NCBI RefSeq assembly: GCF_022045235.1
Contig: NW_027266330.1
Coordinates: forward strand, 31,682,001 to 31,746,000
Direction: 5' to 3'
DNA length: 64,000 nucleotides
Source of the DNA: Haliotis cracherodii
Lineage: Eukaryota
Each line of letters begins with the position of its first letter. Within the stretch, counting starts at the first letter, position 1. Of this stretch, positions 555-39,948 are shown piece by piece. The position numbers were made by a program, and so were the translations under genes. The notes beneath the pieces are model-generated. The model was not told the DNA's origin. It saw only the letters and a program-made list of their open reading frames with translations, and did not search any database.

Positions 555-1176
555 ATGGATCCAGTTCAAGTTGCCATCAAGCTGAGACGACTCCTTATTG
601 CCCACGACAATGCAGTGAAAGAGATCCTGACATTAGGTAAATATGAACTGTGCTCTTTTTCAGTTCCCTGCAAACATGGCAATATTGGTATCACACTGAA
701 TTTTAGAATTGAACAAAATAAAATGACATTGTTGGGAACACATTTACCGAGATTTCTAATTACCCGTTTTATTGTTTTCAGATACCCAAGTCTACCATCT
801 GATGCGGAAGATGACAGCTAACTCCTCCAACAACTGCATAATCCGAGGTGAACAGCTGATCCAGAGACGATGGGTGCTGGAAGGTGTCAAGGAGATGTTT
901 ACCATCTACAGACAACTCAAGTGGCAAGAGGTGCAAGCCTGTGTAAACGCCATCACCAAAGATGCTTCTGGAGAGAGTGATTCGGAGGCGGACTGGAATG
1001 CAGATACCTCTTTCAATGACGATGAAGCTTCCTTCACGGAACTCTTGTCCGACAGCTCATATAGTGAGGACGACGAAGACCAGGGAGACCTATACAGCAA
1101 CGACAGCAGCTACGATATGACGACTCTCAGTCGAGCTTTGTCTGTAGACGACAGTGCACTTCATAGAAACGCCTAA
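555..1176 (+). CDS. Array gene copy 1, uncharacterised 158-aa protein, join(555..636,782..1176)
   Basis: Donor TTAG|GTAAAT at 636/637, branch-like CTAAT at 756-760, acceptor TTGTTTTCAG| at 781; the phase-1 join G+AT=Asp fuses MDPVQ...EILTL in frame to DTQVY...LHRNA*. Confidence 0.85.
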
Positions 1177-1327
1177 GAGAAATCACAAGTCCCATCCACA
1201 TCAACTAGTGCTGCATTTACCTTGTTATTCATTTTTTGTTATTGTACACAAATGTTGCCTGACAGTGTGCAAAGGGCATCCTATTATATTGTAAACCACA
1301 TTTGTTTGTTGATGAATATGCTGAGGA

Positions 1328-1333
1328 AATAAA
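1328..1333 (+). terminator. Putative polyadenylation signal AATAAA (same position in each unit)
   Basis: AATAAA about 150 nt after the stop codon, in an AT-rich 3' UTR. Confidence 0.6.
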
Positions 1334-3072
1334 TAATGAAGTCGATATTATAATCTTGATCATTCACTGACACGCTCACGACATCTTGAAGACATCATTC
1401 GTATAGAGAGAGAGAAAAGGTTAATTTGAGATGGTATCTCACAATACCAAACCTTCGATCATTTTACTTGGTTCTGAGTAAGGCAATCATTCGCAGATAT
1501 CGTCCTTAATCTATTCTTTGAAATAGGAAAAAGATACAGACTAATCAATTGAAATGAAACACATTTGGACATTAGGTATTGATGGAGAAGAAGTGATTCC
1601 AATGTAATGGTTGCACAATAACATTAAATACAGTTTGGAGCGTTGCAATTCGTTTGCCCGTATCCATGCCGATCCTATAGCAAAAGGATTTAGACAGACG
1701 AACCACAACCCCATATGATATTGATCTTAGAGACATATATGTCAGGTTGTATTTCATATTATCAGAGCATTTAATTGTTTCTCTTTCCTTTTGCAATGTA
1801 CATACCCAAGTGCTTAAGGAGATAGTCATGCATGTTAAAAATTGTCAATGCACACAGCATGCAAGACAAAAGGAAATTGAAACATTGACATCAACACAGG
1901 CCAAATAACATTTCTGATCCAAGTCAGCACTTGATGAATACTATTCCCCTGAAAGCACGAAAAAGTAAAGATCAGAATATCCTGACATGAAACAGTGGGC
2001 ATCTTTCAAAAACAATGCTAAAACCGTGCTTATGTTTATCTAGCAACATACTCCAATTTACATCATGTGCTTTAACAGCATTCTGTATTCAAAGATATAA
2101 ATCATGACACCGTGCTTTGTAATTCTCCCAAACACATGACAGTTATACACTGAAGATGATGTCTCTAGATCATTTAACACACATAAACTTTATTGTACAT
2201 GCCTATTTATTTATTTATTTATATAGTAAGCTTTTAAGTACCCGACGTCCACCCAAAAGCTTTTAAGATGGTTAATATCCAGATACTTAAGCCAAATGAG
2301 CTGCTTCAATTATACCATGAGGATGGTATTCATCAAAAATAGTATTTGAAATGCTTCAAAACATACGTAAGACTGGTTGGGGAAATGGTCAGTTTAACAT
2401 AGCATTCACGACCTCAAACAGATGTGTACAATAAGTTCCAGATTTGACTGTACGTTTATTCACTTTGCCTTTGCCTACCACAGTAAGGATTTTTTAGGAT
2501 TGTGGACATGGTTTTCTGGGCTTTTTTAATTGAAACTAAACGTTCAGAGAAGCATCAGACGATTTCCAATCTGATAGAAGTTTCTGTGACTTGGTTTCTG
2601 TGGATGCGAAAGTAACCACATCGGATTTTTAAGTAACACAATGTACTGCACCGTTTGATCAATCCCGATTTAATCAATTAACAATGATTGATAATCCCTG
2701 CAGATAACAGGACTAGATTGGTTGAACTCTTCTCAGACCTCTCCCTTTATACGGAAACTTGTTTTGACAAGAAGTTGATTGGTTTCTCAAGTGGACAGTG
2801 AGATTCCTTTCGGATCAAAGCCGAATGAAGTTGCAGTGTAGCTTTGATCTCGCCACTGGCTTCGAAAATGCTCTCTTTGATCTATAAATCTCTACTACTA
2901 TGTTTATACTAAGGGTAAGTATAAATGTTTTGCACGGACTGGAGTCCTTCACTTCATCTCAATCCGTGAGAACGAACACATCTACTTTCCAATTATCTAA
3001 ATTTGGCGCTACTGAATTCCTGTAGTATTACATCCGACTGCATTCTAGTGTTGTGTCCGAAGGCCCTAGAAA

Positions 3073-3694
3073 ATGGATCCAGTTCAAGTTGCCATCAAGC
3101 TGAGACGACTCCTTATTGCCCACGACAATGCAGTGAAAGAGATCCTGACATTAGGTAAATATGAACTGTGCTCTTTTTCAGTCCCCTGCAAACATTGCAA
3201 TATCGGTATCACACTGAATTTTAGAATTGAACAAAATAAAATGATATTGTTGTGAACACATTTACCGAGATTTCTAATTACCCGTTTTATTGTTTTCAGA
3301 TACCCAAGTCTACCATCTGATGCAGAAGATGACAGCCAACTCCTCCAACAACTGCATAATCCGAGGTGAACAGCTGATCCAGAGACGATGGGTGCTGGAA
3401 GGTGTCAAGGAGATGTTTACCATCTACAGACAACTCAAGTGGCAAGAGGTGCAAGCCTGTGTAAACGCCATCACCAAAGATGCTTCTGGAGAGAGTGATT
3501 CGGAGGCGGACTGGAATGGAGATACCTCTTTCAATGACGATGAAGCTTCCTTCACGGAACTCTTGTCCGACAGCTCATATAGTGAGGACGACGAAGACCA
3601 GGGAGACCTATACAGCAACGACAGCAGCTACGATATGACGACTCTCAGTCGAGCTTTGTCTGTAGACGACAGTGCACTTCATAGAAACGCCTAA
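3073..3694 (+). CDS. Array gene copy 2, join(3073..3154,3300..3694)
   Basis: Same exon/intron structure as copy 1, intact frame. Confidence 0.85.
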
Positions 3695-5471
3695 GAGAAA
3701 TCACAAGTCCCATCCACATCAACTAGTGCTGCATTTACCTTGTTATTCATTTTTTGTTATTGTACACAAATGTTGCCTGACAGTGTGCAAAGGGCATCCT
3801 ATTATATTGTAAACCACATTTGTTTGTTGATGAATATGCTGAGGAAATAAATAATGAAGTCGATATTATAATCTTGATCATTTGCTGACACGCTCACGAC
3901 ATCTTGAAGACATCATTCGTATAGAAAGTTTGTGAGAGAGAGAAAAAAAGGTTAATTTGAGATGGTATCTCACAATACCAAGCCTTCGATCATTTTACTT
4001 GGTTCTGAGTATGGCAATCATTCGCAGATATCGTCCTTAATCTATTCTTTGAAATAGGAAAAGATACAGACTAATCAATTGAAATGAAACACATTAGGTA
4101 TTGATGGAGAAGAAGAGATTCCAAGGTAATGGTTGCACCATAACATTAAATACAGTTTGGAGTGTTGCAATTCGTTTGCCCGTATCCATGCCGATCCTAT
4201 AGCAAAAGGATTTAGACAGACGAACCACAACCCCATATGATATTCATCTGAGAGAGATATATGCCAGGTTGTATTTCATATTATCAGAGCATTTAATTGT
4301 TTCTCTTTCTTTTTGCAATGTACATGCCCAAGTGCTTAAGGAGAGAGTCATACATGTTAAAAAGTGTCAATGCACACAGCATGCAAAACAAAAGGAAATT
4401 GAAACATTGACATCAACACAGGCCAAATAACAGTTTTGATCCAAGTCAGCACTTGATGAATACTATTCCCCTGAAAGCACTAAAAAGTAAAGATCAGAAT
4501 ATCCTGACATGAAACAGTGGGCATCTTTCAAAAACAATGCTAACAACGTGCTTATGTTTATCTAGCAACATACTCCAATTTCCATCATGTGCTTTAACAG
4601 CATTCTGTATTCAAAGATATAAATCATGACACAGTGCTTTGTAATTCTCCCCAAAACATGACAGTTATACACTGAAGATGATGTCTCTAGATCATTTAAC
4701 ACACATAAACTTTATTGTACATGCCTATTTATTTATATAGTAACCTTTTAAGTACCCGACGTCCACCCAAAAGCTTCTAAGATGGTAAATATCCAGATAC
4801 TTAAGCCAAATGAGCTGCTTCAATTATACCATGATGATGGTATTCATCAAAAATAGTATTTGAAATGCTTCAAAACATACGTGCTGTATTTCGATCATGT
4901 AAGACGGGTTGGGAAAATGCTCAGATTAACATAGCATTTACGACCTCCAACAGATGTGTACAATAAGTTCCAGATTTGACTGTACATGTATTCACTTTGC
5001 CTTTGCCTACCTGATTAAGGATTTTTTAGGATTGTGGACATGGTTTTCTCGGCTTTTTTAATTGAAACTAAACGTTCAGAGAAGCATCAGGCGATTTCCA
5101 AGCTGATAGAAGTTACTGTGACTTGGTTTCTGTGGAAGCGACAGTAACCACATCGGATTTTTAAGTAATACAATGTACTGCACCGTTTGATCAATCCCGA
5201 TTTAATCAATTAACAATGATTGATAATCCCTGGAGATAACAGGACTAGATTGGTTGAACTCTTCTCAGACCTCTCCCTTTATACGGAAACTTGTTTTGAC
5301 AAGAAGTTGATTGGTTTCTCAAGTGGACAGTGAGATTCCTTTCGGATCAAAGCCGAATGAAGTTGCAGTGTAGCTTTGATCTCGCCACTGGCTTCGAAAA
5401 TGCTCTCTTTGATCTATAAATCTCTACTACTATGTTTATACTAAGGGTCAGTATAAATGTTTTGCAAGGAC

Positions 5472-5479
5472 TGGAGTCC
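5472..5479 (+). repeat. 5' TSD of LINE copy A, TGGAGTCC (partner 9243-9250)
   Basis: 8-bp direct repeat flanking the insertion; single copy in empty units. Confidence 0.92.
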
Positions 5480-8400
5480 AAATAACTGGCATCCAAATAA
5501 CTCTCAAAAACCAAAAAATAAACATCATTAACGTATACCACTGGGCAGAACAAAAAATTCAAGCTGAGGACCTAAACAAATTACTGCAAATAAGCAATAA
5601 ATCAACTATATTCCTAGGAGACTTTAACGCTCACCACCCCACCTGGAGCATAGATGAAAAAATAGATAATCATGGCAAACTAATCTCTGAATGGATAGAA
5701 ACAAATAACCTTGTACTCCTAAACAATAACCAACCAACTAGATACGATAAGAAAAACCATAAAATGTCGGCTATCGACCTAACCATATGCACCTCAGATC
5801 TGGCCCAAAGTACTCAATGGGAAGTTCACGACGCCCCATTAGGTAGTGACCACTTCCCTATAAACATTACCATAGGCAATACAAACGTTCCTACCCAAAC
5901 AGAAAACCTAGAACCAAAATTCAACTATAACCAAGCTAACTGGGACAAATTTCAGGATATCTGCAACCAAGCCAACCTAACCAAACTAGAAAATAAGGAC
6001 CCAGAAATCTACTGCAAAAACCTAACAGACTACATAATTAACGCAGCCAAAGCATCAATACCTTATAAAACAAATAACGTAGGCAAACCCTCGGTACCAT
6101 GGTGGAACGAGGAAATAGAACAAACTAGACGCAAACGTAAAACAGCCTTCAATAGAGCCAAACGCGACCATAACCATATAACGGTAGCTCACGAACTAAA
6201 CCACAAGGTCCAAAAACTAGTCAAAATAGCTAAAACCAAAGATTGGAAATTATTTTGTGAAGGAGTAAATAATCGCACAGATGCCAGAACAGTCTGGCGA
6301 AAAATCCACGCCATTAGAGGCTTAAAACGTCACAAAAAAACACCCAACATAAACAATTCAACCAACCCTACCGAAAAGGCAAATAACCTAGCAAACCACT
6401 TCTCGGCCATAAGCAGCAACAATAACTTCAGCGAAAAATTCCAACAAAAACTTAAAGCAGAAGCCAAACCTACTAAAGTACCAAATAATGATAACCTCGA
6501 AATAAACCAACCTTACTCAATGGAAGAACTCCAGTACGTACTCCAAAATAGGAAAAAGGGAACTGCCCCAGGACTAGACCTAACATCCTACCAAATAATC
6601 AAAAAACTCCCCCCCAACCTACTCCAGGCACTACTTAAACTATATAACCTAATCTATCAAAACGGACAGGTACCAACTCCCTGGAAACAGGCACTAGTCA
6701 TCCCTATCCCTAAACCCGATAAACCAACTAACCAGGCAAATTCTTATAGACCAATATCCCTAACCTCAAACCTATGTAAAGTAATGGAATCTATGGCCAA
6801 AAATAGACTACAACACTACTTAACTCAAAATAACATCATAAACACAGATCAAAGCGGTTTCACTCCTGGCCGCTCAACCTTAGATAATCTCGCCCGACTA
6901 GAACAGGACATAAAGACGGGACAACTCAACAAACAATACACAACAGGCATCTTTCTGGATTTCTCCAAAGCATTCGACATGGTTTGGCACAACGGGCTAA
7001 TACAAAAACTTAAAAAAATAGGACTAAAAGGACAAATAATAAACTACATTCAGGACTTTCTAAACGAACGTAAAATAACAGTGGGGATAGACCATACTCT
7101 ATCGGACCAGTGTCCCCTAGAAAATGGCACTCCCCAGGGCAGTATCCTCAGCCCCACACTCTTTAATATAATGATAAACGATCTCTTCGAGGGCCTATCC
7201 CCTAAAGTAAACACATCCAAATTCGCGGATGATGGAGCCCTTTGGATCCGCACAAAAAGTATTAATATGGCCCAAAATTTACTCCAAAAATCTCTTAATA
7301 AAATACAACAATGGGCTGACAAATGGGGCTTCTCCCTTAACTCAGAAAAAACAACAGGAATAGTATTCAAACATAAAAACATGAAACCCGCCTCCCCAAT
7401 TCTCCAGCTAAACAACCAAACAATCAAATTTCAAAAACAAACCAAATTCTTAGGACTTATCTTCGATCAACATCTCACCTGGGATGCTCACATCCAAAAC
7501 CTAACAACTAAATGCAGTAAAGACCTAAACACCCTAAGATGCCTCACTGGCTCAAACTGGGGAGCCTCCAAAGATACCCTCCTCTCACTCTACATATCAC
7601 TAATTAGATCAAAACTAGACTACGGCTGCGCCATATACAACACCCTAAACAACTCTCTATCTAAAAAACTTGACTCAATACAATATCAGGCTCTCAAACT
7701 AATTACACGCACCCAACATGGCACCTCCTACACTTCACTCCAGGCCTTAACAGGAGAAATGCCACTAAGTCTACGCAGGGAACAGCTAAGCTTAAATTTC
7801 TGGGCCGCATCCCAATCAAACCCTCTCATCCAAAACCTAATAAACCAAAATATCAGCCCCAAAAACCAAGCTCTAGCTCGTAAACACCCCTTACTTACCC
7901 CAATATCTCAAAGAATAACAAACTACCTAAATGAACACCAAATTAAAAATCTTAAACAAAACTGCAAACAATCAAATATCTTCACCCCTAAACTTAAAAT
8001 ACCCAAAATAGACACAACACTAGCTAGCCAAATAAATAAACAAACCGACCCAAACATAGCTAAAACCACCACACTAGCTTACATACACGAAAATTGGCCA
8101 AATTGGTGTCACATTTACACGGACGGATCTTCAGATCCGACCTCCAAACACACAGGTTTCGGAGTCCATACCACACAACCAACTAAAACTACACAATCCT
8201 TCCGACTCCCAAACAACCAATCAATATTCACGGCAGAACTAATGGGCATGGCCTCAGCCCTCCATAGTCAAGAATCCAAAAACCACAATAAAATCCTAAT
8301 ACTTACCGACTCCCTAAGTGGACTGCAAGCCCTCCAAAACAAAAATACCAAAAACCGACCTAAATTAATAAATCTAATACTTAAAAGCTCCAACGACCTA

Positions 8401-9242
8401 ACTAACGCAGGCAAACAAATAACTTTCTTGTGGATACCCGCCCACGTAGGAATATACGGTAATGAAAACGCCGATAAGGCAGCTAAACTATCCCTCAAAA
8501 TCCCAGAAATAAGCTTAAACTTACCCATCTCAAAATCAGAAATTAAAAGTGTAAATAAGCAAAAAATCACCAAAAAATGGCATAACCTATATCTAAACTC
8601 AAATAGCCAAATCAAAAAAGTACTCAGCAAACCACTAACCAAACCAAAAATTCACCATCCATCAAAAAAAATCGACAGAGTAATCACTAAACTCCAAACA
8701 GGACACACCAACCTAAATAACCACCTAAAAAAAATAAAAAAACATACTACAGGTAACTGCCCACACTGCAAACAACTAGAAAACCCAGAACACGCACTCA
8801 TCTACTGCACACACTACCTAACACATCGAACCGCATTACAAACCACCCTCAATCTAAACCAGGCTCTCACTCTAGAAGCAATACTAAACCCACAAAATAA
8901 ACTAGAAAACTTCAAGGCCTTAGGCGTATTCTTAATCAAAACGGAACTAATAAAACGCATCTAAAAACACTATAATCCACCAAATCAAAATTACATAAAC
9001 ACACAAAAATCCACCATACCCAGCTCCCTTAGTTCTCCTCCCTTACCCCATCGGCATCTATTCCAAATCTCAAAATTCCCAAATTCTATATAAGCAACCC
9101 CTAAAGCCCCCTCTTGGGTTGCACACACCACTTTCGCCCCTTTCGGAAACACATTAAATGGCCTGGCCGGGCCCGTGTGCGAAATACGCATCAGTCGGAA
9201 AGCGCACGTTAAATCTCCAAAGTAAGTAAGTAAGTAAGTAAG
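5480..9242 (+). mobile_element. I-group non-LTR retrotransposon copy A, 5'-truncated within the endonuclease domain, divergent subfamily
   Basis: Begins mid-APE domain (ITGIQITL...FLGDFNAHH); RT and RNase H ORF, 3' UTR, (AAGT)6 tail counting the shared T, 8-bp TSD. Confidence 0.96.
5482..8964 (+). CDS. Copy A ORF2, 5'-truncated: partial APE, RT, RNase H, C-terminal CCHC
   Basis: Frame is open upstream of the track's Met at 5764; motifs GDFNAHH, GSDHFPI, YRPISLTS, DFSKAFD, PQGSILSP, FADD, YTDGS, AEL, TDS, WIPAHVGIYGNENAD, CPHC..HALIYC. Confidence 0.93.
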   Translation: MTGIQITLKNQKINIINVYHWAEQKIQAEDLNKLLQISNKSTIFLGDFNAHHPTWSIDEKIDNHGKLISEWIETNNLVLLNNNQPTRYDKKNHKMSAIDLTICTSDLAQSTQWEVHDAPLGSDHFPINITIGNTNVPTQTENLEPKFNYNQANWDKFQDICNQANLTKLENKDPEIYCKNLTDYIINAAKASIPYKTNNVGKPSVPWWNEEIEQTRRKRKTAFNRAKRDHNHITVAHELNHKVQKLVKIAKTKDWKLFCEGVNNRTDARTVWRKIHAIRGLKRHKKTPNINNSTNPTEKANNLANHFSAISSNNNFSEKFQQKLKAEAKPTKVPNNDNLEINQPYSMEELQYVLQNRKKGTAPGLDLTSYQIIKKLPPNLLQALLKLYNLIYQNGQVPTPWKQALVIPIPKPDKPTNQANSYRPISLTSNLCKVMESMAKNRLQHYLTQNNIINTDQSGFTPGRSTLDNLARLEQDIKTGQLNKQYTTGIFLDFSKAFDMVWHNGLIQKLKKIGLKGQIINYIQDFLNERKITVGIDHTLSDQCPLENGTPQGSILSPTLFNIMINDLFEGLSPKVNTSKFADDGALWIRTKSINMAQNLLQKSLNKIQQWADKWGFSLNSEKTTGIVFKHKNMKPASPILQLNNQTIKFQKQTKFLGLIFDQHLTWDAHIQNLTTKCSKDLNTLRCLTGSNWGASKDTLLSLYISLIRSKLDYGCAIYNTLNNSLSKKLDSIQYQALKLITRTQHGTSYTSLQALTGEMPLSLRREQLSLNFWAASQSNPLIQNLINQNISPKNQALARKHPLLTPISQRITNYLNEHQIKNLKQNCKQSNIFTPKLKIPKIDTTLASQINKQTDPNIAKTTTLAYIHENWPNWCHIYTDGSSDPTSKHTGFGVHTTQPTKTTQSFRLPNNQSIFTAELMGMASALHSQESKNHNKILILTDSLSGLQALQNKNTKNRPKLINLILKSSNDLTNAGKQITFLWIPAHVGIYGNENADKAAKLSLKIPEISLNLPISKSEIKSVNKQKITKKWHNLYLNSNSQIKKVLSKPLTKPKIHHPSKKIDRVITKLQTGHTNLNNHLKKIKKHTTGNCPHCKQLENPEHALIYCTHYLTHRTALQTTLNLNQALTLEAILNPQNKLENFKALGVFLIKTELIKRI

Positions 9243-10216: not shown

Positions 10217-10345
10217 NNNNNNNNNNNNNNNNNNNNNNNNNNNNNNNNNNNNNNNNNNNNNNNNNNNNNNNNNNNNNNNNNNNNNNNNNNNNNNNNNNNN
10301 NNNNNNNNNNNNNNNNNNNNNNNNNNNNNNNNNNNNNNNNNNNNN
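10217..10345. other. Assembly gap (N run)
   Basis: Ns at the position of the unit's (GA)n microsatellite. Confidence 0.99.
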
Positions 10346-17668: not shown

Positions 17669-19462
17669 GGGAAATCACAAGTCCCATCCACATCAACTAG
17701 TGCTGCATTTACCTTGTTATTCATTTTTTGTTATTGTACACAAATGTTGCCTGACAGTGTGCAAAGGGCATCCTATTATATTGTAAACCACATTTGTTTG
17801 TTGATGAATATGCTGAGGAAATAAATAATGAAGTCGATATTATAATCTTGATCATTTGCTGACACGCTCACGACATCTTGAAGACATCATTCGCATAGAA
17901 AGTTTGTGAGAGACAGAGAGAGAGAGAGAGAGAAAAGGTTAATTTGAGATGGTATCTCACAATACCAAGCCTTCCATCATTTTACTTGGTTCTGAGTATG
18001 GCAATCATTCGAAGATATCGTCCTTAATCTATTCTTTGAAATAGGAAAAGATACAGACTAATCAATTGAAATGAAACACATTAGGTATTGATGGAGAAGA
18101 AGAGATTCCAAGGTAATGGTTGCACCATAACATTAAATACAGTTTGGAGCGTTGCAATTCGTTTGCCCGTATCCATGCCGATCCTATAGCAAAAGGATTT
18201 AGACAGACGAACCACAACCCCATATGATATTCATCTGAGAGAGATATATGCCAGGTTGTATTTCATATTATCAGAGCATTTAATTGTTTCTCTTTCTTTT
18301 TGCAATGTACATGCCCAAGTGCTTAAGGAGAGAGTCATGCATGTTAAAAAGTGTCAATGCACACAACATGCAAAACAAAAGGAAATTGAAACATTGACAT
18401 CAACACAGGCCAAATAACATTTTTGATCCAAGTCAGCACTTGATGAATACTATTCCCCTGAAAGCACTAAAAAGTAAAGATCAGAATATCCTGACATGAA
18501 ACAGTGGGATTCTTTCAAAAACAATGCTAACAACGTGCTTATGTTTATCTAGCAACATACTCCAATTTCCATCATGTGCTTTAACAGCATTCTGTATTCA
18601 AAGATATAAATCATGACACAGTGCTTTGTAATTCTCCCCAAAACATGACAGTTATACACTGAAGATGATGTCTCTAGATCATTTAACACACATAAACTTT
18701 ATTGTACATGCCTATTTATTTATATAGTAACCTTTTAAGTACCCGACGTCCACCCAAAAGCTTCTAAGATGGTAAATATCCAGATACTTAAGCCAAATGA
18801 GCTGCTTCAATTATACCATGATGATGGTATTCATCAAAAATAGTATTTGAAATGCTTCAAAACATACGTGCTGTATTTCGATCATGTAAGACGGGTTGGG
18901 AAAATGCTCAGATTAACATAGCATTTACGACCTCCAACAGATGTGTACAATAAGTTCCAGATTTGACTGTACATGTATTCACTTTGCCTTTGCCTACCTG
19001 ATTAAGGATTTTTTAGGATTGTGGACATGGTTTTCTCGGCTTTTTTAATTGAAACTAAACGTTCAGAGAAGCATGCATCAGACGATTTCCAAGCTGATAG
19101 AAGTTTCTGTGACTTGGTTTCTGTGGAAGCGAAAGTAACCACATCGGATTTTTAAGTAATACAATGTACTGCACCGTTTGATCAATCCCGATTTAATCAA
19201 TTAACAATGATTGATAATCCCTGGAGATAACAGGACTAGATTGGTTGAACTCTTCTCAGACCTGTCCCTTTATACGGAAACTTGTTTTGACAAGAAGTTG
19301 ATTGGTTTCTCAAGTGGACAGTGAGATTCCTTTCGGATCAAAGCCGAATGAAGTTGCAGTGTAGCTTTGATCTCGCCACTGGCTTCGAAAATGCTCTCTT
19401 TGATCTATAAATCTCTACTACTATGTTTATACTAAGGGTAAGTATAAATGTTTTGCAAGGAC

Positions 19463-19473
19463 TGGAGTCCTTC
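19463..19473 (+). repeat. 5' TSD of LINE copy B, TGGAGTCCTTC (partner 25801-25811)
   Basis: 11-bp direct repeat flanking the element. Confidence 0.95.
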
Positions 19474-20099
19474 GCAGTTTGTACTCCCAGCGAGCAACAC
19501 TTCCCAAGCCAGCACAGAGCATTGCCTGATAGCCAGCCAAGGAAACTCCATCATCGGTAATTATCACGTTATCCTTATTCACATACTCTTAAAATCACTC
19601 TCACCGAATTAATCATAAAACCCCTAAATCCTTAAAAAACAACAACACTAAATAACCAACACCTTATCCTACCCAATCTCCCTAACACAGCTCGCACTCA
19701 TTTCTACTCACACCCACGCCCACCACTCAAATACACCCTTTGACCCAACTCCTAAAAGCAAAAAACACCTAATCCCCCCTTCTCCTAAACACAACGCTCG
19801 CTCTTTCCTACTCACCACCCACGCCCACCACTCACATACCTCCACTCCTTCGACTAAATATCTCTTAATCCCCGCTTTCCACTTGTCTCACCTTATCCCA
19901 GCCTTCCAGAATCAAACTTAATCTTCAATAAATAATCCATTTCCCAAACCCTCCTACTAAAACCAACAACAAATAACCACCGCAACCTCCTCCGCCTCCT
20001 AAACACAAATCACCAAGTAAAAACAACAAACCAACTCACCTCCCCAAAACCACCACCACTCACCACAACACACGCTCTCCAACACAACACCCAAACAAT

Positions 20100-21725
20100 A
20101 TGACTGACACCCGCAACGCCACACTCGCAGACATTCCAGCTCCTTACTCACCCACGCCTGCGGAAGCGCACAACACTTCTGGGAGGTCACTCGAAAACAT
20201 CGTCCCGACCGAGTATGGCGAAAACACGACATACACCACCCCAACCAAACCAGCTAACTCGCCACCACAAAACACCAAAAAACGCAAACTCGACACATCC
20301 ACTCCACCTCCATCGCCAACACCCTCCCCGGCCGCCTTCCTCACCACCTTCGCCCTCTACTTCTTCTCAGCAGGCTCAGGCACCACTCTCTCACTAGAAC
20401 TTTCGGCAGACAAAATAGGACTTTGGTTCAAAAGACAAAAAATAAATTACAACAATATTAAAAAAGCCAACAAAGGATACCAGATAATCTTTCCTAACCG
20501 AGAATCTTACAACGCAGCAAATAAAATAACTCAAATATTCCACGTCACGGTAATCAAACAAACACCTAATTGGCAACAATATACACGAGGCGTAATAAGG
20601 GTTAACCCAAGGGAAACAACTGAGGACTTACAATTATACTCTCTAGAAGCTAACATAAACCAAGACCAAAACCCTCAACCCCTAATCACCAGCACGCGCA
20701 GAATAACCTCAACTAGAAACGGAAAAACGGTCCCAACCTCCATTGTCATAATCTACTTTAAAAAAACCGCTAAATTCCCTGAAGCCCCCAAACACATATC
20801 CTTCGGAGCCCACACAAACTTAGAAGTCAAACCCTATATAAAGCAGGTTAAGCAATGTTCAAAGTGCCTCAAATACAACCACACTGCTTCCCAATGCACC
20901 TACCCTAAAACTAAATGTAAAAAATGCGCACAAACAGACTGCCCAGGCACATGCACACCCTGGTGCATCCACTGCAAATCCACCCAACACACTTCACTTT
21001 CAAACCAATGCCCACACAGACACACACTCACCCAGCAGGCCAACAAACACATAAACATAGAAACGGCTAAAATCCAAACACGAAAATTTGCTACACCTGC
21101 ATCTAAACCACTCCTCCCTACACCACACCCAAACACCATCCCACAAACAAACAGCACACCCATAACCGACAGCTCTGTCTGGGACCCCTACCGAGAAACC
21201 GCACCCACCTCACACACACAAGCAGCCACTCAACCAACCACGAACCCTCCCAAAACATCAACCCCCGCATGCAAAACAAACCTCAAAATGACCACCACAA
21301 CACGACCCTCATCCAAGCACCCTACAGCCCATATGGCAACAACGCTCTCCCACAAGCAAGCACAACAACAAAACACAAACACTAAGAAAACATCAGCTAC
21401 ACCCATCCCGCCAACACCTTCACAACCCTCCACATCACATGCCTCCCCCATGGAAACTCAACCAGCTAAACCTAATCCAACCCATGACGAAGATTTCTCC
21501 ACTACTGAGGAAACAATAGACACTACTCCAACTAAAACAAACCAAACTTCCCAACCAGCCAACACCCCAAACCTAAATAACCTCACCTTACTCCTAGCAT
21601 ATATGCATAGTCAAAACTCACCAAAAGCTAGTATGGAATCCTTCCACAAAGTAGCTTTCAATCTAAAATTAACCGATCTTCCCTTCTTCCTCTTTAACCT
21701 CCATCTAAAAGAACTCACCGAATAA
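20100..21725 (+). CDS. Copy B ORF1, gag-like nucleic-acid-binding protein (541 aa)
   Basis: Zinc-knuckle cluster CSKCLKYNHTASQC / CKKC..DCPGTC / CIHCKSTQHTSLSNQC preceded by VKPYI; KKRK NLS-like motif; T/P/S-rich tail. Confidence 0.9.
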   Translation: MTDTRNATLADIPAPYSPTPAEAHNTSGRSLENIVPTEYGENTTYTTPTKPANSPPQNTKKRKLDTSTPPPSPTPSPAAFLTTFALYFFSAGSGTTLSLELSADKIGLWFKRQKINYNNIKKANKGYQIIFPNRESYNAANKITQIFHVTVIKQTPNWQQYTRGVIRVNPRETTEDLQLYSLEANINQDQNPQPLITSTRRITSTRNGKTVPTSIVIIYFKKTAKFPEAPKHISFGAHTNLEVKPYIKQVKQCSKCLKYNHTASQCTYPKTKCKKCAQTDCPGTCTPWCIHCKSTQHTSLSNQCPHRHTLTQQANKHINIETAKIQTRKFATPASKPLLPTPHPNTIPQTNSTPITDSSVWDPYRETAPTSHTQAATQPTTNPPKTSTPACKTNLKMTTTTRPSSKHPTAHMATTLSHKQAQQQNTNTKKTSATPIPPTPSQPSTSHASPMETQPAKPNPTHDEDFSTTEETIDTTPTKTNQTSQPANTPNLNNLTLLLAYMHSQNSPKASMESFHKVAFNLKLTDLPFFLFNLHLKELTE

Positions 21726-21744
21726 AATAAAAACTAAAAACTAA

Positions 21745-24700
21745 ATCACCAATCACCCGAACCCAATATTCGAAGGACTAAATATTTTTCAGTGGAACGC
21801 CAACGGACTCACCTCCCACGGCCATGAACTAAAAACTAAATTTAAACTAAATAAAGGCCCTCACATTGCTTGTATACAGGAAACCAAATTCTCAAAAAAA
21901 TCGAAATTCACACTACCTAACTACAACTCAGTTAGAACTGACAGAGCTAAACCGAAAACAAGAAGAGCCGCAGGAGGACTAATCATATTTATCAGGGAAG
22001 ATATAAATTACGAAGAAATAAAAATAGACACGCCAAACCTAGAAGCCAACGGCATTAAAATCACATTAAATAACCGAAACATAAACATCATAAATATTTA
22101 CCACTGGGCGGAACAAAAAGTCCAACCTGAGGATCTAAACAAACTACTCAAAATAAGCGATAAATCTACTATATTCCTAGGAGACTTTAACGCTCACCAT
22201 CCTACATGGAGCATAGATGATAAAATAGATACTCATGGCAAATTAATCTCCGAATGGATAGAAACAAACGACCTAGTACTCCTTAATAGCAACCAACCCA
22301 CGAGGTACGATAAGATAAACCAAAAAATGTCGGCTATCGACCTAACCATATGCACCGCAGATCTAGCCCAAAGCACTCAATGGGAAGTGCACGACGTCCC
22401 GCTAGGTAGCGACCACTTCCCCATAAACATAACCATAGGAAATACAAACGTACCAATCCAAACAGAAAACCAAGAACCAAAATTCCATTACAACAAAGCT
22501 AACTGGGACCAATTCCAAGATATCTGCAACGAAGCTAACTTAAACGAAATAGAAAATAATGATCCAGAAACCTATTGTAAAAACCTAACAGACTATATAA
22601 TAAACGCAGCCAAAACCTCCATCCCCTTCAAAGTATCTAAGACAGGCAAACCGACGGTACCATGGTGGAATGAGGAAATAGAACAGACTAGACGAAAACG
22701 TAAATCAGCCTTCAATAAAGCAAAACGCGACTACAAATATTTAAACATAGCCCACGAACTAAACCACCAGGTTCAAAAACTAGTCCAAATAGCCAAAAGT
22801 AGAGACTGGAAAAAATTCTGCGAAGGTATAAATAACCGTACAGATGCCAGAACGGTCTGGCGCAAAATCCACGCCATTAGAGGCTTAAAACGACATAAAA
22901 AAAACCCTAACATTAACAACTCAACCAACCCCGCCCAAAAAGCAAATAATCTCGCCAACCACTTTTCGGCCGTTAGCAGTAACAGCAACTTCAGCCAAAA
23001 ATTCCAAGATAAACTTAAAACAGAAAACAAACCCACAAAAGAACCAAACAATAACAATCTAGAAATAAATCAACCCTACACAATGGAGGAGCTCCTCTAC
23101 GTAATCCAAAACAGGAAAAAGGGCACAGCCCCAGGATTAGACCTAACCTCTTACCAAATAATTAAAAAACTCCCCCTAAAACTGCTCCAGGCACTACTCA
23201 AGCTATACAATCTCATCTACCTAAACGGACAGGTTCCTACACCCTGGAAACAGGCCCTAGTCATACCAATCCCTAAACCTAATAAACCAGCTAATCAAGC
23301 TAACTCATATAGACCAATATCCCTAACTTCAAACTTATGTAAAGTAATGGAATCAATGGCTAAAAATAGATTACAACATTACTTAACCCAAAATAACACC
23401 ATAAACCCAGATCAAAGCGGTTTCACTCCTGGCCGCTCAACCCTAGATAACCTCGCCCGACTAGAACAAGATATTAAGACAGGACAACTAAATAAACAAT
23501 ATACCACAGGCATCTTCTTAGACTTCTCTAAAGCTTTCGACATGGTATGGCACGATGGGCTAATACAAAAACTTAAAAAAATAGGACTCAAAGGTCAGAT
23601 AATAAACTACATCCAGGACTTCCTAAACAATCGTAAAATAACCGTGTGTATAGACCAAACTCTATCGGACCAATGTCCCCTAGAAAATGGCACTCCACAG
23701 GGCAGTATCCTCAGCCCCACCCTCTTCAATATAATGATAAACGATCTATTCGAGGGTCTATCCCCTAAAGTAAACACATCAAAATTCGCGGATGATGGAG
23801 CCATCTGGATCCGCACTAAAAGCATGAAAATGGCCACAAATCTACTCCAAAAATCTCTTAATAAAATACAACAATGGGCTGACAAATGGGGCTTCTCCCT
23901 TAACTCAGAAAAAACAACAGGAATAGTATTCAAACATAAAAACATGAAACCCGCCTCCCCAATCCTCCAGCTAAACAACCAAACAATCAAATTTCAAAAA
24001 CAAACCAAATTCTTAGGACTTATTTTCGATGAACATCTCACCTGGGATGCTCACATCCAAAACCTAACAACTAAATGCAGTAAAGACCTAAACACCCTAA
24101 GATGCCTAACTGGCTCTAACTGGGGAGCCTCCAAAGATACTCTCCTCTCTCTCTACATATCCCTAATTAGATCAAAACTAGACTACGGCTGCGCCATATA
24201 CAACACCCTAAACAACTCTCTATCCAAAAAACTTGACTCAATACAATATCAGGCTCTCAAACTCATTACACGCACCCAACATGGCACCTCCTACACCTCA
24301 CTTCAGGCCTTAACAGGAGAAATGCCACTAAGTCTACGCAGGGAACAGCTAAGCTTAAATTTCTGGGCCGCGTCCCAATCAAACCCTCTCATCCAAAACT
24401 TAATAAACCAAAACATCAGCCCTAAAAACCAAGCTCTAGCTCGTAAACACCCCTTACTTACCCCAATATCCCAAAGAATAACAAACTACCTAAATGAACA
24501 CCAAATTAAAAATCTTAAACAAAACTGCAAACAATCAAATATCTTCACCCCTAAACTTAAAATACCCAAAATAGACACAACACTAGCTAGCCAAATAAAT
24601 AAACAAACCGACCCAAACATAGCTAAAACTACCACACTAGCATACATACACAAAAATTGGCCAAATTGGTGTCACATTTACACGGACGGATCCTCAGATC

Positions 24701-25527
24701 CGACCTCCAAACACACGGGTTTCGGAGTCCATACCACACAACCAACTAAAACCACACAATCCTTCCGACTCCCAAATAACCAATCAATATTCACGGCCGA
24801 ACTAATGGGCATGGCCTCAGCCCTCCACAATCAAGAATCCAAAAACAACCAAAAAATCCTAATACTTACTGACTCCCTAAGTGGACTACAAGCCCTCCAA
24901 AACAAAAATACCAAAAACCGACCTAAATTAATAAATCAAATACTTAAAAGCTCCAACGACCTAACAAAAGCAGGCAAACAAATAACCTTCTTGTGGATAC
25001 CCGCCCACGTAGGAATATACGGTAATGAAAACGCCGATAAAGCAGCTAAACTATCCCTCAAAATCCCAGAAATAAGCTTAAACTTACCCATCTCAAAAAC
25101 AGAAATTAAAAGTGTAAACAAACAAAAAATCACAAAAAAATGGCATAACCTATATCTAAACTCAAATAGCAAAATCAAAAGAGTGCTCAGCAAACCACTA
25201 ACCAAACCAAAAATTCTCCATCCATCAAAAAAAATCGACAGAGTAATCACTAAACTGCAAACAGGACACACCAACCTAAATAACCACCTAAAAAATTTTA
25301 AAAAACACACTACAGGTAACTGCCCACACTGCAAACAACCAGAAACCCCAGAACACGCACTCATCCACTGCACACACTACCTAACACATCGAACCGCATT
25401 ACAAACCACCCTCAATCTAAACAAGGCTCTCACTCTAGAAGCAATACTAAACCCACAAAATAAACTAGAAAACTTCAAGGCCTTAGGCGTATTCTTAATA
25501 AAAACGGAACTAATAAAACGCATCTAA
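21745..25527 (+). CDS. Copy B ORF2 (APE-RT-RNase H-CCHC), lacking an AUG at the expected start
   Basis: Frame is open from the TAA at 21742-21744; TTC at 21769 replaces the ATG seen in copy C; complete APE (QWNANG, IQET, GDFNAHH, SDH) lies largely upstream of the track's Met at 22327. Confidence 0.9.
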   Translation: MTNHPNPIFEGLNIFQWNANGLTSHGHELKTKFKLNKGPHIACIQETKFSKKSKFTLPNYNSVRTDRAKPKTRRAAGGLIIFIREDINYEEIKIDTPNLEANGIKITLNNRNINIINIYHWAEQKVQPEDLNKLLKISDKSTIFLGDFNAHHPTWSIDDKIDTHGKLISEWIETNDLVLLNSNQPTRYDKINQKMSAIDLTICTADLAQSTQWEVHDVPLGSDHFPINITIGNTNVPIQTENQEPKFHYNKANWDQFQDICNEANLNEIENNDPETYCKNLTDYIINAAKTSIPFKVSKTGKPTVPWWNEEIEQTRRKRKSAFNKAKRDYKYLNIAHELNHQVQKLVQIAKSRDWKKFCEGINNRTDARTVWRKIHAIRGLKRHKKNPNINNSTNPAQKANNLANHFSAVSSNSNFSQKFQDKLKTENKPTKEPNNNNLEINQPYTMEELLYVIQNRKKGTAPGLDLTSYQIIKKLPLKLLQALLKLYNLIYLNGQVPTPWKQALVIPIPKPNKPANQANSYRPISLTSNLCKVMESMAKNRLQHYLTQNNTINPDQSGFTPGRSTLDNLARLEQDIKTGQLNKQYTTGIFLDFSKAFDMVWHDGLIQKLKKIGLKGQIINYIQDFLNNRKITVCIDQTLSDQCPLENGTPQGSILSPTLFNIMINDLFEGLSPKVNTSKFADDGAIWIRTKSMKMATNLLQKSLNKIQQWADKWGFSLNSEKTTGIVFKHKNMKPASPILQLNNQTIKFQKQTKFLGLIFDEHLTWDAHIQNLTTKCSKDLNTLRCLTGSNWGASKDTLLSLYISLIRSKLDYGCAIYNTLNNSLSKKLDSIQYQALKLITRTQHGTSYTSLQALTGEMPLSLRREQLSLNFWAASQSNPLIQNLINQNISPKNQALARKHPLLTPISQRITNYLNEHQIKNLKQNCKQSNIFTPKLKIPKIDTTLASQINKQTDPNIAKTTTLAYIHKNWPNWCHIYTDGSSDPTSKHTGFGVHTTQPTKTTQSFRLPNNQSIFTAELMGMASALHNQESKNNQKILILTDSLSGLQALQNKNTKNRPKLINQILKSSNDLTKAGKQITFLWIPAHVGIYGNENADKAAKLSLKIPEISLNLPISKTEIKSVNKQKITKKWHNLYLNSNSKIKRVLSKPLTKPKILHPSKKIDRVITKLQTGHTNLNNHLKNFKKHTTGNCPHCKQPETPEHALIHCTHYLTHRTALQTTLNLNKALTLEAILNPQNKLENFKALGVFLIKTELIKRI

Positions 25528-25933
25528 AACCATAATAACCTACCAAATCAAAATCACATAAACAAACAATCATCCACCATACCCAGCTCCCTTAGTTCTC
25601 CTCCCCAACCCCATCAGCATCTATTCCAAATCTCAAAATTCCCAAATTCTATATAAGCAACCCCTAAAGCCCCCTCTTGGGTTGCACAGACCACCCTCGC
25701 CCCTTTCGGAAACACATTAAATGGCCTGGCCGGCCCGTGTGCGAAATACGCATCAGTCGGAAAGCGCACGTTAAATCTCCAAAGTAAGTAAGTAAGTAAG
25801 TGGAGTCCTTCACTGCATCTCAATCCGTGAGAACGAACACATCTACTTTCCAATTATCTAAATTTGGCGCTACTGAATTCCTGTAGTATTACATCCGACT
25901 GCATTCTAGTGTTGTGTCCGAAGGCCCTAGAAA

Positions 25934-31662: not shown

Positions 31663-32386
31663 GGGAAATCACAAGTCCCATCCACATCAACTAGTGCTGC
31701 ATTTACCTTGTTATTCATTTTTTTGTTATTGTACACAAATGTTGCCTGACAGTGTGCAAAGGGCATCCTATTATATTGTAAACCACATTTGTTTGTTGAT
31801 GAATATGCTGAGGAAATAAATAATGAAGTCGATATTATAATCTTGATCATTTGCTGACACGCTCACGACATCTTGAAGACATCATTCGTATAGAAAGTTT
31901 GTGAGAGAGAGAGAGAGAGAGAAAAGGTTCATTTGAGATGGTATCTCACAATACCAAGCCTTCCATCATTTTACTTGGTTCTGAGTATGGCAATCATTCG
32001 AAGATATCGTCCTTAATCTATTCTTAGGAAAAGATACAGACTAATCAATTGAAATGAAACACATTAGGTATTGATGGAGAAGAAGAGATTCCAAGGTAAT
32101 GGTTGCAACATAACATTAAATACAGTTTGGAGCGTTGCAATTCTTTTGCCCGTATCCATGCCGATCCTATAGCAAAAGGATTTAGACAGACGAACCACAA
32201 CCCCATATGATATTCATCTGAGAGAGATATATGCCAGGTTGTATTTCATATTATCAGAGCATTTAATTGTTTCTCTTTCTTTTTGCAATGTACATGCCCA
32301 AGTGCTTAAGGAGAGAGTCATGCATGTTAAAAAGTGTCAATGCACACAGCATGCAAAACAAAAGGAAATTGAAACATTGACATCAA

Positions 32387-33346
32387 ACCGCTAAATTCCC
32401 TGAAGCCCCCAAACACATATCCTTCGGAGCCCACACCAACTTAGAAGTCAAACCCTATATAAAGCAGGTTAAGCAATGTTCAAAGTGCCTCAAATACAAC
32501 CACACTGCTTCCCAATGCACCTACCCTAAAACTAAATGTAAAAAATGCGCACAAACAGACTGCCCAGGCACATGCACACCCTGGTGCATCCACTGCAAAT
32601 CCACCCAACACACCTCACTTTCAAACCAATGCCCACACAGACACACACTCACCCAGCAGGCCAACAAACACATAAACATAGAAACGGCTAAAATCCAAAC
32701 ACGAAAATTTGCTACACCTGCATCTAAACCACTCCTCCCTACACCACACCCAAACACCATCCCACAAACAAACACCACACCCATAACCCACAGCTCTGTC
32801 TGGGACCCCTACCTAGAAACCGCAACCACCTCACACACACAAGCAGCCACTCAACCAACCACGAACCCTCCCAAAACATCAACCCCCGCATGCAAAACAA
32901 ACCTCAAAATGACCACCACAACACGACCCTCATCCAAGCACCCTACAGCCCATATGGCAACAACGCTCTCCCACAAGCAAGCACAACAACAAAACACAAA
33001 CACTAAGAAAACATCAGCTACACCCATCCCGCCAACACCTTCACAACCCTCCACATCACATGCCTCCCCCATGGAAACTCAACCAGCTAAACCTAATCCA
33101 ACCCATGACGAAGATTTCTCCACTACTGAGGAAACAATAGACACTACTCCAACTAAAACAAACCAAACTTCCCAACCAGCCAACACCCCAAACCTAAATA
33201 ACCTCACCTTACTCCTAGCATATATGCATAGTCAAAACTCACCAAAAGCTAGTATGGAATCCTTCCACAAAGTAGCTTTCAATCTAAAATTAACCGATCT
33301 TCCCTTCTTCCTCTTTAACCTCCATCTAAAAGAACTCACCGAATAA
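32387..33346 (+). pseudogene. Copy C ORF1 C-terminal fragment
   Basis: Matches ORF1 of copies B/D from TAKFPEAP onward, including the zinc knuckles. Confidence 0.88.
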
Positions 33347-33389
33347 AATAAAAACTAAAAACTAAATCACCAATCACCCGAAACCAATA

Positions 33390-36300
33390 ATGGAAGGACT
33401 AAATATTTTTCAGTGGAACGCCAACGGACTCACCTCCCACGGCCATGAACTAAAAACTAAATTTAAACTAAATAAAGGCCCTCACATTGCTTGTATACAG
33501 GAAACCAAATTCTCAAAAAAATCGAAATTCACACTACCTAACTACAACTCAGTTAGAACTGACAGAGCTAAACCGAAAACAAGAAGAGCCGCAGGAGGAC
33601 TAATCATATTTATCAGGGAAGATATAAATTACGAAGAAATAAAAATAGACACGCCAAACCTAGAAGCCAACGGCATTAAAATCACATTAAATAACCGAAA
33701 CATAAACATCATAAATATTTACCACTGGGCGGAACAAAAAGTCCAACCTGAGGATCTAAACAAACTACTCAAAATAAGCGATAAATCTACTATATTCCTA
33801 GGAGACTTTAACGCTCACCATCCTACATGGAGCATAGATGATAAAATAGATAATCATGGCAAATTAATCTCCGAATGGATAGAAACAAACGACCTAGTAC
33901 TCCTTAATAGCAACCAACCCACGAGGTACGATAAGATAAACCAAAAAATGTCGGCTATCGACCTAACCATATGCACCGCAGATCTAGCCCAAAGCACTCA
34001 ATGGGAAGTGCACGACGTCCCGCTAGGTAGCGACCACTTCCCCATAAACATAACCATAGGAAATACAAACGTACCAATCCAAACAGAAAACCAAGAACCA
34101 AAATTCCATTACAACAAAGCTAACTGGGACCAATTCCAAGATATCTGCAACGAAGCTAACTTAAACGAAATAGAAAATAATGATCCAGAAACCTATTGTA
34201 AAAACCTAACAGACTATATAATAAACGCAGCCAAAACCTCCATCCCCTTCAAAACATCTAAGACAGGCAAACCGACGGTACCATGGTGGAATGAGGAAAT
34301 AGAACAGACTAGACGAAAACGTAAATCAGCCTTCAATAAAGCAAAACGCGACTACAAATATTTAAACATAGCCCACGAACTAAACCACCAGGTTCAAAAA
34401 CTAGTCCAAATAGCCAAAAGTAGAGACTGGAAAAAATTCTGCGAAGGTATAAATAACCGTACAGATGCCAGAACGGTCTGGCGCAAAATCCACGCCATTA
34501 GAGGCTTAAAACGACATAAAAAAACCCCTAACATTAACAACTCAACCAACCCCGCCCAAAAAGCAAATAATCTCGCCAACCACTTTTCGGCCGTTAGCAG
34601 TAACAGCAACTTCAGCCAAAAATTCCAAGATAAACTTAAAACAGAAAACAAACCCACAAAAGAACCAAACAATAACAATCTAGAAATAAATCAACCCTAC
34701 ACAATGGAGGAGCTCCTCTACGTAATCCAAAACAGGAAAAAGGGCACAGCCCCAGGATTAGACCTAACCTCTTACCAAATAATTAAAAAACTCCCCCTAA
34801 AACTGCTCCAGGCACTACTCAAACTATACAATCTCATCTACCTAAACGGACAGGTTCCTACTCCCTGGAAACAGGCCCTAGTCATACCAATCCCTAAACC
34901 TAATAAACCAGCTAATCAAGCTAACTCATATAGACCAATATCCCTAACTTCAAACTTATGTAAAGTAATGGAATCAATGGCTAAAAATAGATTACAACAT
35001 CACTTAACCCAAAATAACACCATAAACCCAGATCAAAGCGGTTTCACTCCTGGCCGCTCAACCCTAGATAACCTCGCCCGACTAGAACAAGATATTAAGA
35101 CAGGACAAATAAATAAACAATATACCACAGGCATCTTCTTAGACTTCTCTAAAGCTTTCGACATGGTATGGCACGATGGGCTAATACAAAAACTTAAAAA
35201 AATAGGACTCAAAGGTCAGATAATAAACTACATCCAGGACTTCCTAAACAATCGTAAAATAACCGTGTGTATAGACCAAACTCTATCGGACCAATGTCCC
35301 CTAGAAAATGGCACTCCACAGGGCAGTATCCTCAGCCCCACCCTCTTCAATATAATGATAAACGATCTATTCGAGGGCCTATCCCCTAAAGTAAACACAT
35401 CAAAATTCGCGGATGATGGAGCCATCTGGATCCGCACTAAAAGCATGAAAATGGCCCAAAATTTACTCCAAAAATCTCTTAATAAAATACAACAATGGGC
35501 TGACAAATGGGGCTTCTCCCTTAACTCAGAAAAAACAACAGGAATAGTATTCAAACATAAAAACATGAAACCCGCCTCCCCAATCCTCCAGCTAAACAAT
35601 CAAACAATCAAATTTCAAAAACAAACCAAATTCTTAGGACTTATTTTCGATGAACATCTCACCTGGGATGCTCACATCCAAAACCTAACAACTAAATGCA
35701 GTAAAGACCTAAACACCCTAAGATGCCTAACTGGCTCTAACTGGGGAGCCTCCAAAGATACTCTCCTCTCTCTCTACATATCCCTAATTAGATCAAAACT
35801 AGACTACGGCTGCGCCATATACAACACCCTAAACAACTCTCTATCTAAAAAACTTGACTCAATACAATATCAGGCTCTCAAACTCATTACACGCACCCAA
35901 CATGGCACCTCCTACACCTCACTTCAGGCCTTAACAGGAGAAATGCCACTAAGTCTACGCAGGGAACAGCTAAGCTTAAATTTCTGGGCCGCGTCCCAAT
36001 CAAACCCTCTCATCCAAAACTTAATAAACCAAAACATCAGCCCTAAAAACCAAGCCCTAGCTCGTAAACACCCCTTACTTACCCCAATATCCCAAAGAAT
36101 AACAAACTACCTAAATGAACACCAAATTAAAAATCTTAAACAAAACTGCAAACAATCAAATATCTTCACCCCTAAACTTAAAATACCCAAAATAGACACA
36201 ACACTAGCTAGCCAAATAAATAAACAAACCGACCCAAACATAGCTAAAACTACCACACTAGCATACATACACAAAAATTGGCCAAATTGGTGTCACATTT

Positions 36301-39929: not shown

Positions 39930-39948
39930 AATAAAAACTAAAAACTAA

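Follow-up and report, generated by a model that had tools for sequence, protein, structure and literature searches.

What fixes the landing point of a retrotransposon that has entered a tandem gene array six times at one and the same nucleotide? The question is raised by a 64,000-nt stretch of Haliotis cracherodii DNA (NCBI RefSeq assembly GCF_022045235.1, contig NW_027266330.1, positions 31,682,001 to 31,746,000 of the forward strand), here called the window, in which copies of a long interspersed nuclear element (LINE) interrupt a repeated host gene just downstream of its TATA box. Head-to-tail units of 2.52-2.57 kb fill the 64-kb window (contig C67 of a 1.18-Gb genome), and pattern searches of the genome extend the array to about 151 kb and about 46 units. 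An initial reading of the window from its letters only, hereafter the sequence-only reading, had proposed that insertion places the first base of the element at the predicted +1 of the host gene and thereby captures the host promoter. The geometry behind that proposal holds at this locus. Across the genome, the family probably integrates at a set distance 3' of forward-oriented TATA boxes instead of recognising the array gene.

By virtue of its repetition, the target can be described from many uninterrupted copies. Every empty unit consists at this point of TATAAATG, an interval of 23 nt and then TTC-A-CT, with the first T of the box at -31 relative to the A. In unit 1, the reference empty target spans 402-439 (all such coordinates are those of the window, and all features given by them lie on its plus strand), with TATAAATG at 402-409 and the insertion point between C432 and A433 inside the initiator-like TCACT; the 31-nt spacing from 402 to 433 given by the sequence-only reading is correct. 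The exact 34-nt pattern of the empty promoter is present in 40 array units, and the unit variants TCACTTC and TCACTGC at the predicted +1 are both initiator-like. An inverted repeat, GGACT-GG-AGTCC, lies within the insertion target at 417-428, and two unit types are marked by a C/A polymorphism just upstream of it (GCAMGG) together with T/G at +4 (ACTT/ACTG). The host gene itself (555-1176) has two exons and an ATG located 122 nt 3' of the predicted +1, and encodes an uncharacterised, Haliotis-restricted protein of 158 amino acids. A protein search with exon 2 alone as the query returned Haliotis rufescens entries named 'uncharacterized protein' at 98-99% identity and H. asinina at 88%, with no matches beyond Haliotis, and on this comparison the gene is considered a lineage-restricted orphan of the genus.

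The insertion from which the proposal arose, copy B (19474-25801), corresponds to positions 241-6569 of the full-length element at 99.8% identity and lacks the first of two repeats in the 5' untranslated region (UTR). The C at 19473 is the last host base and the G at 19474 is element base 1, exactly +31 from the first T of the host TATA box at 19443, as had been claimed; the same T lies 33 nt before the A of GCAGTT. The target-site duplication (TSD), GGAGTCCTTC, occupies 19464-19473 upstream (host -10 to -1) and recurs at 25802-25811, between the (TAAG)n tail (25784-25801) and host ACTGC. Read as (T)GGAGTCCTTC, it measures 10-11 bp and has its last base at host -1, which agrees with the 11-bp duplication originally described. 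Copy B carries a first open reading frame (ORF1; 20100-21725) for a gag-like protein of 541 amino acids with CCHC zinc knuckles, followed by an ORF2 frame of 1252 open codons (21769-25527) that encodes an apurinic-type endonuclease (APE), reverse transcriptase (RT) and RNase H and has TTC, not ATG, as its first codon. The host gene downstream is physically separated from its promoter, and the predicted disconnection of one host copy is thus borne out. The accompanying expectation of an essentially unit-length element RNA is not, since copy B starts at position 241, the beginning of the second 5' UTR repeat, and is 240 nt short of full length.

The remaining insertions in the window meet the array at the same place. 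Copy A (5484-9242) is 5'-truncated, covers full-length positions 2815-6569 and is flanked by the TSD TGGAGTCC; it is assigned to an older subfamily because its identity to the other copies is only 91%, and its nick position is identical to that of copy B. Further downstream is a double insertion. Its upstream element (32385-37427) is 5'-truncated (positions 1531-6569, 99.4% identity), and is followed by a TSD-sized spacer, GGAGTCCTTC, at 37428-37437, by a full-length element of 6569 bp at 37438-44006, and by the downstream TSD at 44007-44016. The full-length element begins CAGTTGCAGTTTGTACC, has ORF1 at 38304-39929, the end of ORF2 at 43731 and a (TAAG)n tail. The sequence-only reading had cited this composite alongside copy B; the copy at 37438 does begin, with CAGTTGCAGTT, directly after GGAGTCCTTC, but the host TATA box and about 1.05 kb have been deleted and no TATA box is captured there. 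The upstream element has its 5' junction at host unit position 1494, and the missing part of the unit, which includes the TATA box, represents a deletion associated with that junction. Since the four elements of the window have four different 5' ends, they represent four independent insertion events. With two more 3' junctions to the same target elsewhere in the array, this nucleotide has been hit six times in about 46 units. Empty units are also separated by another two gaps, of 7-11 kb (G000:C67:31644078-31654948 and 31672704-31679877), which have no standard 3' junction at their end and probably hold other insertions.

One interpretation of this recurrence is a LINE of the R2 or SLACS kind, dedicated to the tandem gene, that reads the local palindromic GGACTGGAGTCC and lives off a single promoter. 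Six array insertions from at least two subfamilies at an identical nick position would suit such an element, as would the inverted repeat in the target. The genome-wide distribution does not. The first 427 nt of copy B recur, 99-100% identical, at no fewer than 40 loci spread across many contigs. A 37-nt pattern for the 5' end has 157 matches genome-wide, a lower bound on the number of 5' ends, and a query for the 3' end gave 1252 first-look candidates, or about 1,250 3' ends, again across many contigs. The exact 3' junction to the array target occurs only five times in the genome, always inside the array, and the TSDs elsewhere are unlike GGAGTCCTTC. A dedicated LINE is accordingly very improbable. 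The R2-like dedication to one host gene that the sequence-only reading implied has to be given up for a dispersed family whose members lie about 31 nt 3' of TATA boxes in mostly unrelated sequences.

The association with TATA boxes was measured on 37 distinct full-length 5' junctions, for which the loci had been oriented and duplicates and head-to-tail cases removed. Most full-length copies begin CAGTTGCAGTTTGTACC. After two repeat families accounting for seven flanks are collapsed, the 37 flanks fall into about 32 unrelated groups, and they share neither a TSD consensus nor one conserved target sequence of the type that defines R1, R2, Tx1, SLACS and NeSL. What they share is a box: TATAWA starts at -24 to -40 in 20 of 37 junctions against 1.25 expected (binomial P ~3e-20), where the background comes from 64 equally wide control windows further upstream (mean 1.25 of 37, maximum 4). 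A position weight matrix (PWM) score of at least 6 is reached at 22 of the 37, with 1.7 expected. The signal stays within -21 to -40 and has its mode at -29 to -34, it is oriented (forward TATAAA 10 times, reverse TTTATA once), and many of the target boxes fit TATAWAWR with a trailing G.

Junctions with intact duplications add the positions of both cuts. Eight sites combine an unambiguous TSD with a good box; in these, the first nick, on the bottom strand, falls 18-23 nt 3' of the first T and the 5' junction 30-38 nt 3' of it, a fixed offset from an oriented promoter element as is characteristic of Ty3 and TRE5-A. The TSDs measure 8-13 bp, have no consensus and do not include the box. In five cases both junctions of an element could be paired (L005/L039, L029/L042, L023/L048, L010/L049 and L006/L040), and in each the TSD abuts the first base of the element; four of these sites have clear boxes and L006/L040 does not, and 2-4 filler nucleotides are present at the 5' junction in three of the five. 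Initiator motifs at the second nick were sought in ten sites, and several are suggestive (TCACT, TCAGT, TCATTC) in a sample too small to judge. Among copies truncated nearer the 3' end, an upstream box was seen by inspection in 7 of 13 (including L036, L038, L044, L045 and L054), and therefore the rule is independent of a complete 5' end. The same TATA rule is seen in subfamilies that are only 89-91% identical (copy A, L061, L067). Collectively, these observations make it probable that the family integrates at a set distance 3' of forward-oriented TATA boxes, of which the array gene offers one.

An association of this kind could in principle be artefactual. LINE endonucleases often favour AT-rich sites, and AT content in the flanks reaches up to 74% in the bin from -21 to -30, so that an AT-rich endonuclease preference, selection after insertion or 5' transduction might each be suspected. 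However, the nick falls 18-23 nt from the box, the TSDs are not AT-rich, and the TATA peak is both narrow and strand-specific. Copies that are 99-100% identical leave little time for selection. Two specific forms of the argument can be set aside altogether: a nick inside the TATA box is ruled out by TSDs that exclude the box, and transduction of donor flanks is ruled out by TSDs that abut the first base of the element. An artefact is therefore highly unlikely to account for the pattern.

Given a real association, it may be asked whether the motif is enough. In the flanks, TATAWA has a density of about 0.002 per nt per strand, which corresponds to about 4.7 million sites genome-wide. If any TATAWA could serve as a target, about 0.01-0.06 events would be expected in the array against the six found (P below 1e-10). 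The TATA motif alone is insufficient to explain the targeting. The host promoter itself provides a second comparison, as it contains two boxes: a proximal TATAAATG at 19443-19450, whose first T is 31 nt before element base 1 and whose PWM score is 9.9, and a distal TATAAA at 19406-19411, extending to TATAAAT, which lies 37 nt further 5' and is used by none of the six insertions.

Targets outside the array tend in the same direction. One repeat family has been struck five or six times at offsets that differ by a few nt (L007, L010, L061, L067, L074, L049, L053); it carries TGTATATATACTTG and then AATAAA about 90 nt on, and looks like a long terminal repeat or another mobile-element promoter. 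L053 is a copy of this family with a mutated box, TGTATACATG, and here the insertion is found further downstream. About 10% of copies are head-to-tail tandems with a TSD-sized spacer, as would be expected if the same promoter were struck again. At L055 (L055:47-1060:-), the 3' junction of the element lies 415 nt 5' of an intronless ORF of 338 amino acids in the same sense, which has a TALE homeobox domain (PF05920, E = 2e-11). Other insertion flanks are the 5' regions or bodies of other LINEs. Since the array is hit recurrently, its distal box goes unused, and repeat-family hits, tandems, L055 and the flanks in other LINEs all occur, the targets look like working promoters more than arbitrary motifs. 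Truncated copies at L034, L043, L052 and L031 lie antisense within the first ~100 nt of the 5' UTRs of related LINEs; at L031, an inverted copy of the same family has received the insertion, beside its TATAAATAC-flanked start.

The same data bear on the possibility that a protein of the element itself recognises the TATA sequence, or the shape of its DNA, without help from a host factor, such that landing at a start site is a by-product and an internal promoter transcribes the element. Strong, oriented TATAWAWR with a trailing G at the targets would be natural for such a protein. A uniform 5' end, CAGTTGCAGTT, at every TATA offset and a TATA-like box in the 5' UTR ahead of a second CAGTT motif would accord with internal transcription. 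Against it, the motif alone predicts about 0.02 array hits where six are seen, the distal TATAAAT 37 nt upstream is passed over in six of six cases, and no extra DNA-binding domain is detected. We regard direct reading as rather unlikely.

A different objection is that the proximal TATAAATG is not the host promoter at all. The start would then lie upstream, the target would fall within an intron of the 5' UTR or an extended leader, and the '+1' would concern a cryptic TATA. A near-perfect splice-donor consensus, AAGG/GTAAGTAT, overlaps the proximal box at 396-409 and in every unit. This overlap of the donor-like GGTAAGTAT with TATAAATG speaks for the objection, as do plausible acceptors (cctgtag, ttctag) before the ATG and the second TATAAAT 37 nt upstream. 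The alternative is nevertheless judged distinctly unlikely because, with a start from the distal box, no more than 3 nt of exon would precede the donor. In addition, an initiator-like TCACT stands at exactly +31 of the proximal box and is kept in 40 of 40 empty units, and all six LINE hits are measured from that box.

Turning to the element itself, the full-length form has an 866-nt 5' UTR, ORF1 for 541 amino acids with CCHC knuckles, the 1252-codon ORF2 frame and a (TAAG)n tail. Pfam matches in ORF2 are PF14529 and PF03372 at residues 8-219, PF00078 at 501-752 and PF00075 (RNase H) at 969-1095, and residues 5-752 align to human L1 ORF2p with E = 1e-32. An N-terminal apurinic-type endonuclease followed by RT is the arrangement of an APE-type LINE, and RNase H placed C-terminal to RT together with a CCHC gag-like ORF1 is that of the I superfamily. 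These domains place the element among the APE-type LINEs, in the RNase H-bearing I superfamily. Nimbus and Ingi are the clades of that superfamily reported in gastropods (PMC11203168). The hallmarks of target-primed reverse transcription are present, namely 5' truncations (at 241, 1531 and 2815 in the window and at many points elsewhere), TSDs of 8-13 bp and the (TAAG)n tail. For ORF1, the nearest protein-atlas clusters are CCHC and PRE_C2HC proteins of a generic gag-like nature, and permissive Pfam searches returned nothing for ORF1 or the ORF2 linker and only a weak zf-RVT match for the ORF2 C-terminus. Three copies have both ORF1 and the 1252-codon ORF2 frame uninterrupted, from which the element is likely to be active. 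The first codon of the ORF2 frame is ATG in one copy (33390) and TTC in two (39973 and 21769), which suggests that ORF2 translation is independent of an ATG at that position.

How might such a LINE find working promoters? TATA-dependent initiation by RNA polymerase II (Pol II) is expected about 30-38 nt after the first T of the box. We tentatively propose, at somewhat less than even confidence, that this LINE lineage finds Pol II core promoters through the complex bound to TATA and so pairs the host TATA with an initiator of its own. The ruler that positions the ORF2 protein would be host proteins assembled on the box, either TBP/TFIID or the pre-initiation complex, and not naked DNA. Array recurrence far beyond the motif expectation and the unused distal box speak for this indirectly. 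The template strand would be cut about two helical turns 3' of the box and the second strand near +1. The extreme 5' end of the element is the initiator-like CAGTTGCAGTT, with no TATA upstream of it inside the element, and each insertion would join this initiator to a host TATA box at a working distance, which would constitute promoter capture; the cost to the host would be one disconnected gene copy per insertion. Promoter capture by the element is plausible on these grounds. Several properties of the 5' end that the sequence-only reading had listed were confirmed: the initiator-like CAGTT motifs are present, and a canonical downstream promoter element (DPE) has no match at +28 to +32. A search of Rfam found no ribozyme within the first 1.1 kb.

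A number of points weigh against homing by way of a TATA-bound complex, or limit the association on which it is built. About 50 insertions were sampled, all in one genome, and the TATA PWM behind the 22 of 37 junctions was entered by hand, with the plain TATAWA count in agreement. About 15% of full-length insertions have no nearby TATA-like sequence, and about 25% have degenerate boxes only. Neither Pfam, including at a permissive threshold, nor the protein atlas revealed in ORF1 or ORF2 a domain that could bind TBP, or DNA some way off. Most full-length copies start at the same C despite TATA offsets from -24 to -38; so uniform a start points to control by the element's own initiator or an internal promoter, not by the captured TATA. 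Finally, a TATA-like box belonging to the element precedes a second start site. This last point also overturns the idea that the element depends wholly on the host promoter, as the box, AAAATAAA at 37646, stands 27 nt before a second CAGTTGCAGTT.

The second start site belongs to a duplication. Most full-length copies have two 5' UTR repeats (37438-37810 in the window) that are about 89% alike over about 140 nt. Both begin CAGTTGCAGTTTGTAC, and the first ends with AAAATAAA, from which the second start is 27 nt away. The duplicated 5' UTR could be the trace of one element inserted 3' of a TATA-like box in the 5' UTR of a relative. The internal box and start occupy 37646-37683, with the second CAGTTGCAGTT at 37673 and the equivalent of the first base of copy B at 37678, 32 nt from the box. 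From this position, a 5-nt window in a 6.6-kb element, copy B may descend from an RNA started at the internal box. If so, the same TATA-to-start rule would apply to the element itself.

The 3' end of the element has features of its own. A canonical TATATAAG is present in the 3' UTR about 150 nt before the tail (43852-43859, and also in the regions of 25646 and 9084). Where two elements stand head to tail, transcription from this motif could run on into the copy downstream, in the manner of HeT-A. No nested insertions 3' of this TATATAAG were seen, at an expected number too low to be informative. At L046 and L037, the last 60-110 nt of the element are partially duplicated behind the tail, which may come from template switching at the 3' end. 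Elsewhere in the array, one unit contains 129 consecutive N (10217-10345), from a gap in the assembly or from masking, and near unit position 1007 some units, but not others, have a (GA)n microsatellite whose length varies (26797, 45002, 47571, 50132, 52701, 60354 and 62913).

Comparison with known systems helps to place the family. Ty3 is an LTR retrotransposon of Saccharomyces cerevisiae whose integration at Pol III start sites is directed by TFIIIB, with TBP and Brf1 required in vitro (PMC5911963). The abalone LINE resembles Ty3 in that integration occurs at the start site itself, at a position set by an upstream TBP-containing complex, which for the abalone LINE we infer. The two differ in that Ty3 uses an integrase and Pol III genes, whereas the abalone LINE uses target-primed reverse transcription and Pol II-type TATA promoters, both those of protein-coding genes and those of transposons; moreover, insertion of the abalone LINE separates the gene from its promoter. 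A second system for comparison is TRE5-A of Dictyostelium, an APE-type LINE that likewise keeps a set distance from a transcription complex. The TFIIIB subunits TBP, Brf1 and Bdp1 are bound by the ORF1 protein of TRE5-A, whose own promoter module is more effective beside the target gene (PMC5911963). Yet TRE5-A inserts about 44-54 bp upstream of tRNA genes in the opposite orientation and has no RNase H.

Among elements of tandem genes, SLACS, CZAR and CRE insert a few nt 3' of the start of a tandem Pol II gene, the spliced-leader (SL) gene of trypanosomatids, much as the abalone LINE does in its array. SLACS RNA starts at +1 of the interrupted SL RNA gene, which would make it an instance of promoter capture. 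These elements rely on a restriction-like endonuclease and one sequence-defined gene, while the abalone LINE has many unrelated targets that share only TATA. R2 and R1 in rDNA offer a further parallel, in that tandem multicopy host genes tolerate insertions and element expression depends on the host promoter, as promoter capture would have it for the abalone LINE. They differ in having a single conserved target, Pol I co-transcription and, in R2, a 5' ribozyme; neither a ribozyme nor a conserved target was found for the abalone LINE.

The Drosophila I factor, jockey, Doc and F, LINEs with internal promoters of the initiator type, have the same protein layout as the abalone LINE, with a CCHC ORF1, APE and RT, to which the I factor adds RNase H, and like it they open with a CAGT-type initiator. 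They rely on downstream promoter elements, whereas the abalone LINE has no DPE match and its target supplies the TATA. To our knowledge, none of the four aims at TATA boxes. Tf1, MLV, the P element and piggyBac favour Pol II promoter regions, but do so by integrases or transposases and within windows of hundreds of bp, in contrast to an offset within a few nt of TATA. The position-specific retrotransposons known to us read either fixed DNA, such as ribosomal DNA (rDNA), small nuclear RNA or SL genes, telomeres and microsatellites, or the Pol III machinery. Full-text literature searches yielded no LINE described as targeting TATA boxes or Pol II start sites, the form of transcription-machinery-guided targeting that the abalone family would represent.

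If the proposed homing is correct, it would be a new mode of target choice and a Pol II counterpart of Ty3 that works through target-primed reverse transcription. Retroelement-based gene insertion currently relies on the rDNA-specific R2 (PMC11371274), and a LINE with the abalone rule would be of interest for retroelement-based genome engineering. The insertions would also serve as a natural probe of the promoters bound by TBP/TFIID in the germline. For the family, the rule could explain how a LINE without an internal upstream TATA regains a working promoter at each site. For the abalone, hits would concentrate on TATA-driven genes, such as those in tandem arrays or the TALE homeobox gene. Such targeting predicts a mutational pressure on TATA-driven genes and, with it, a reason for redundant arrays or families of such genes.

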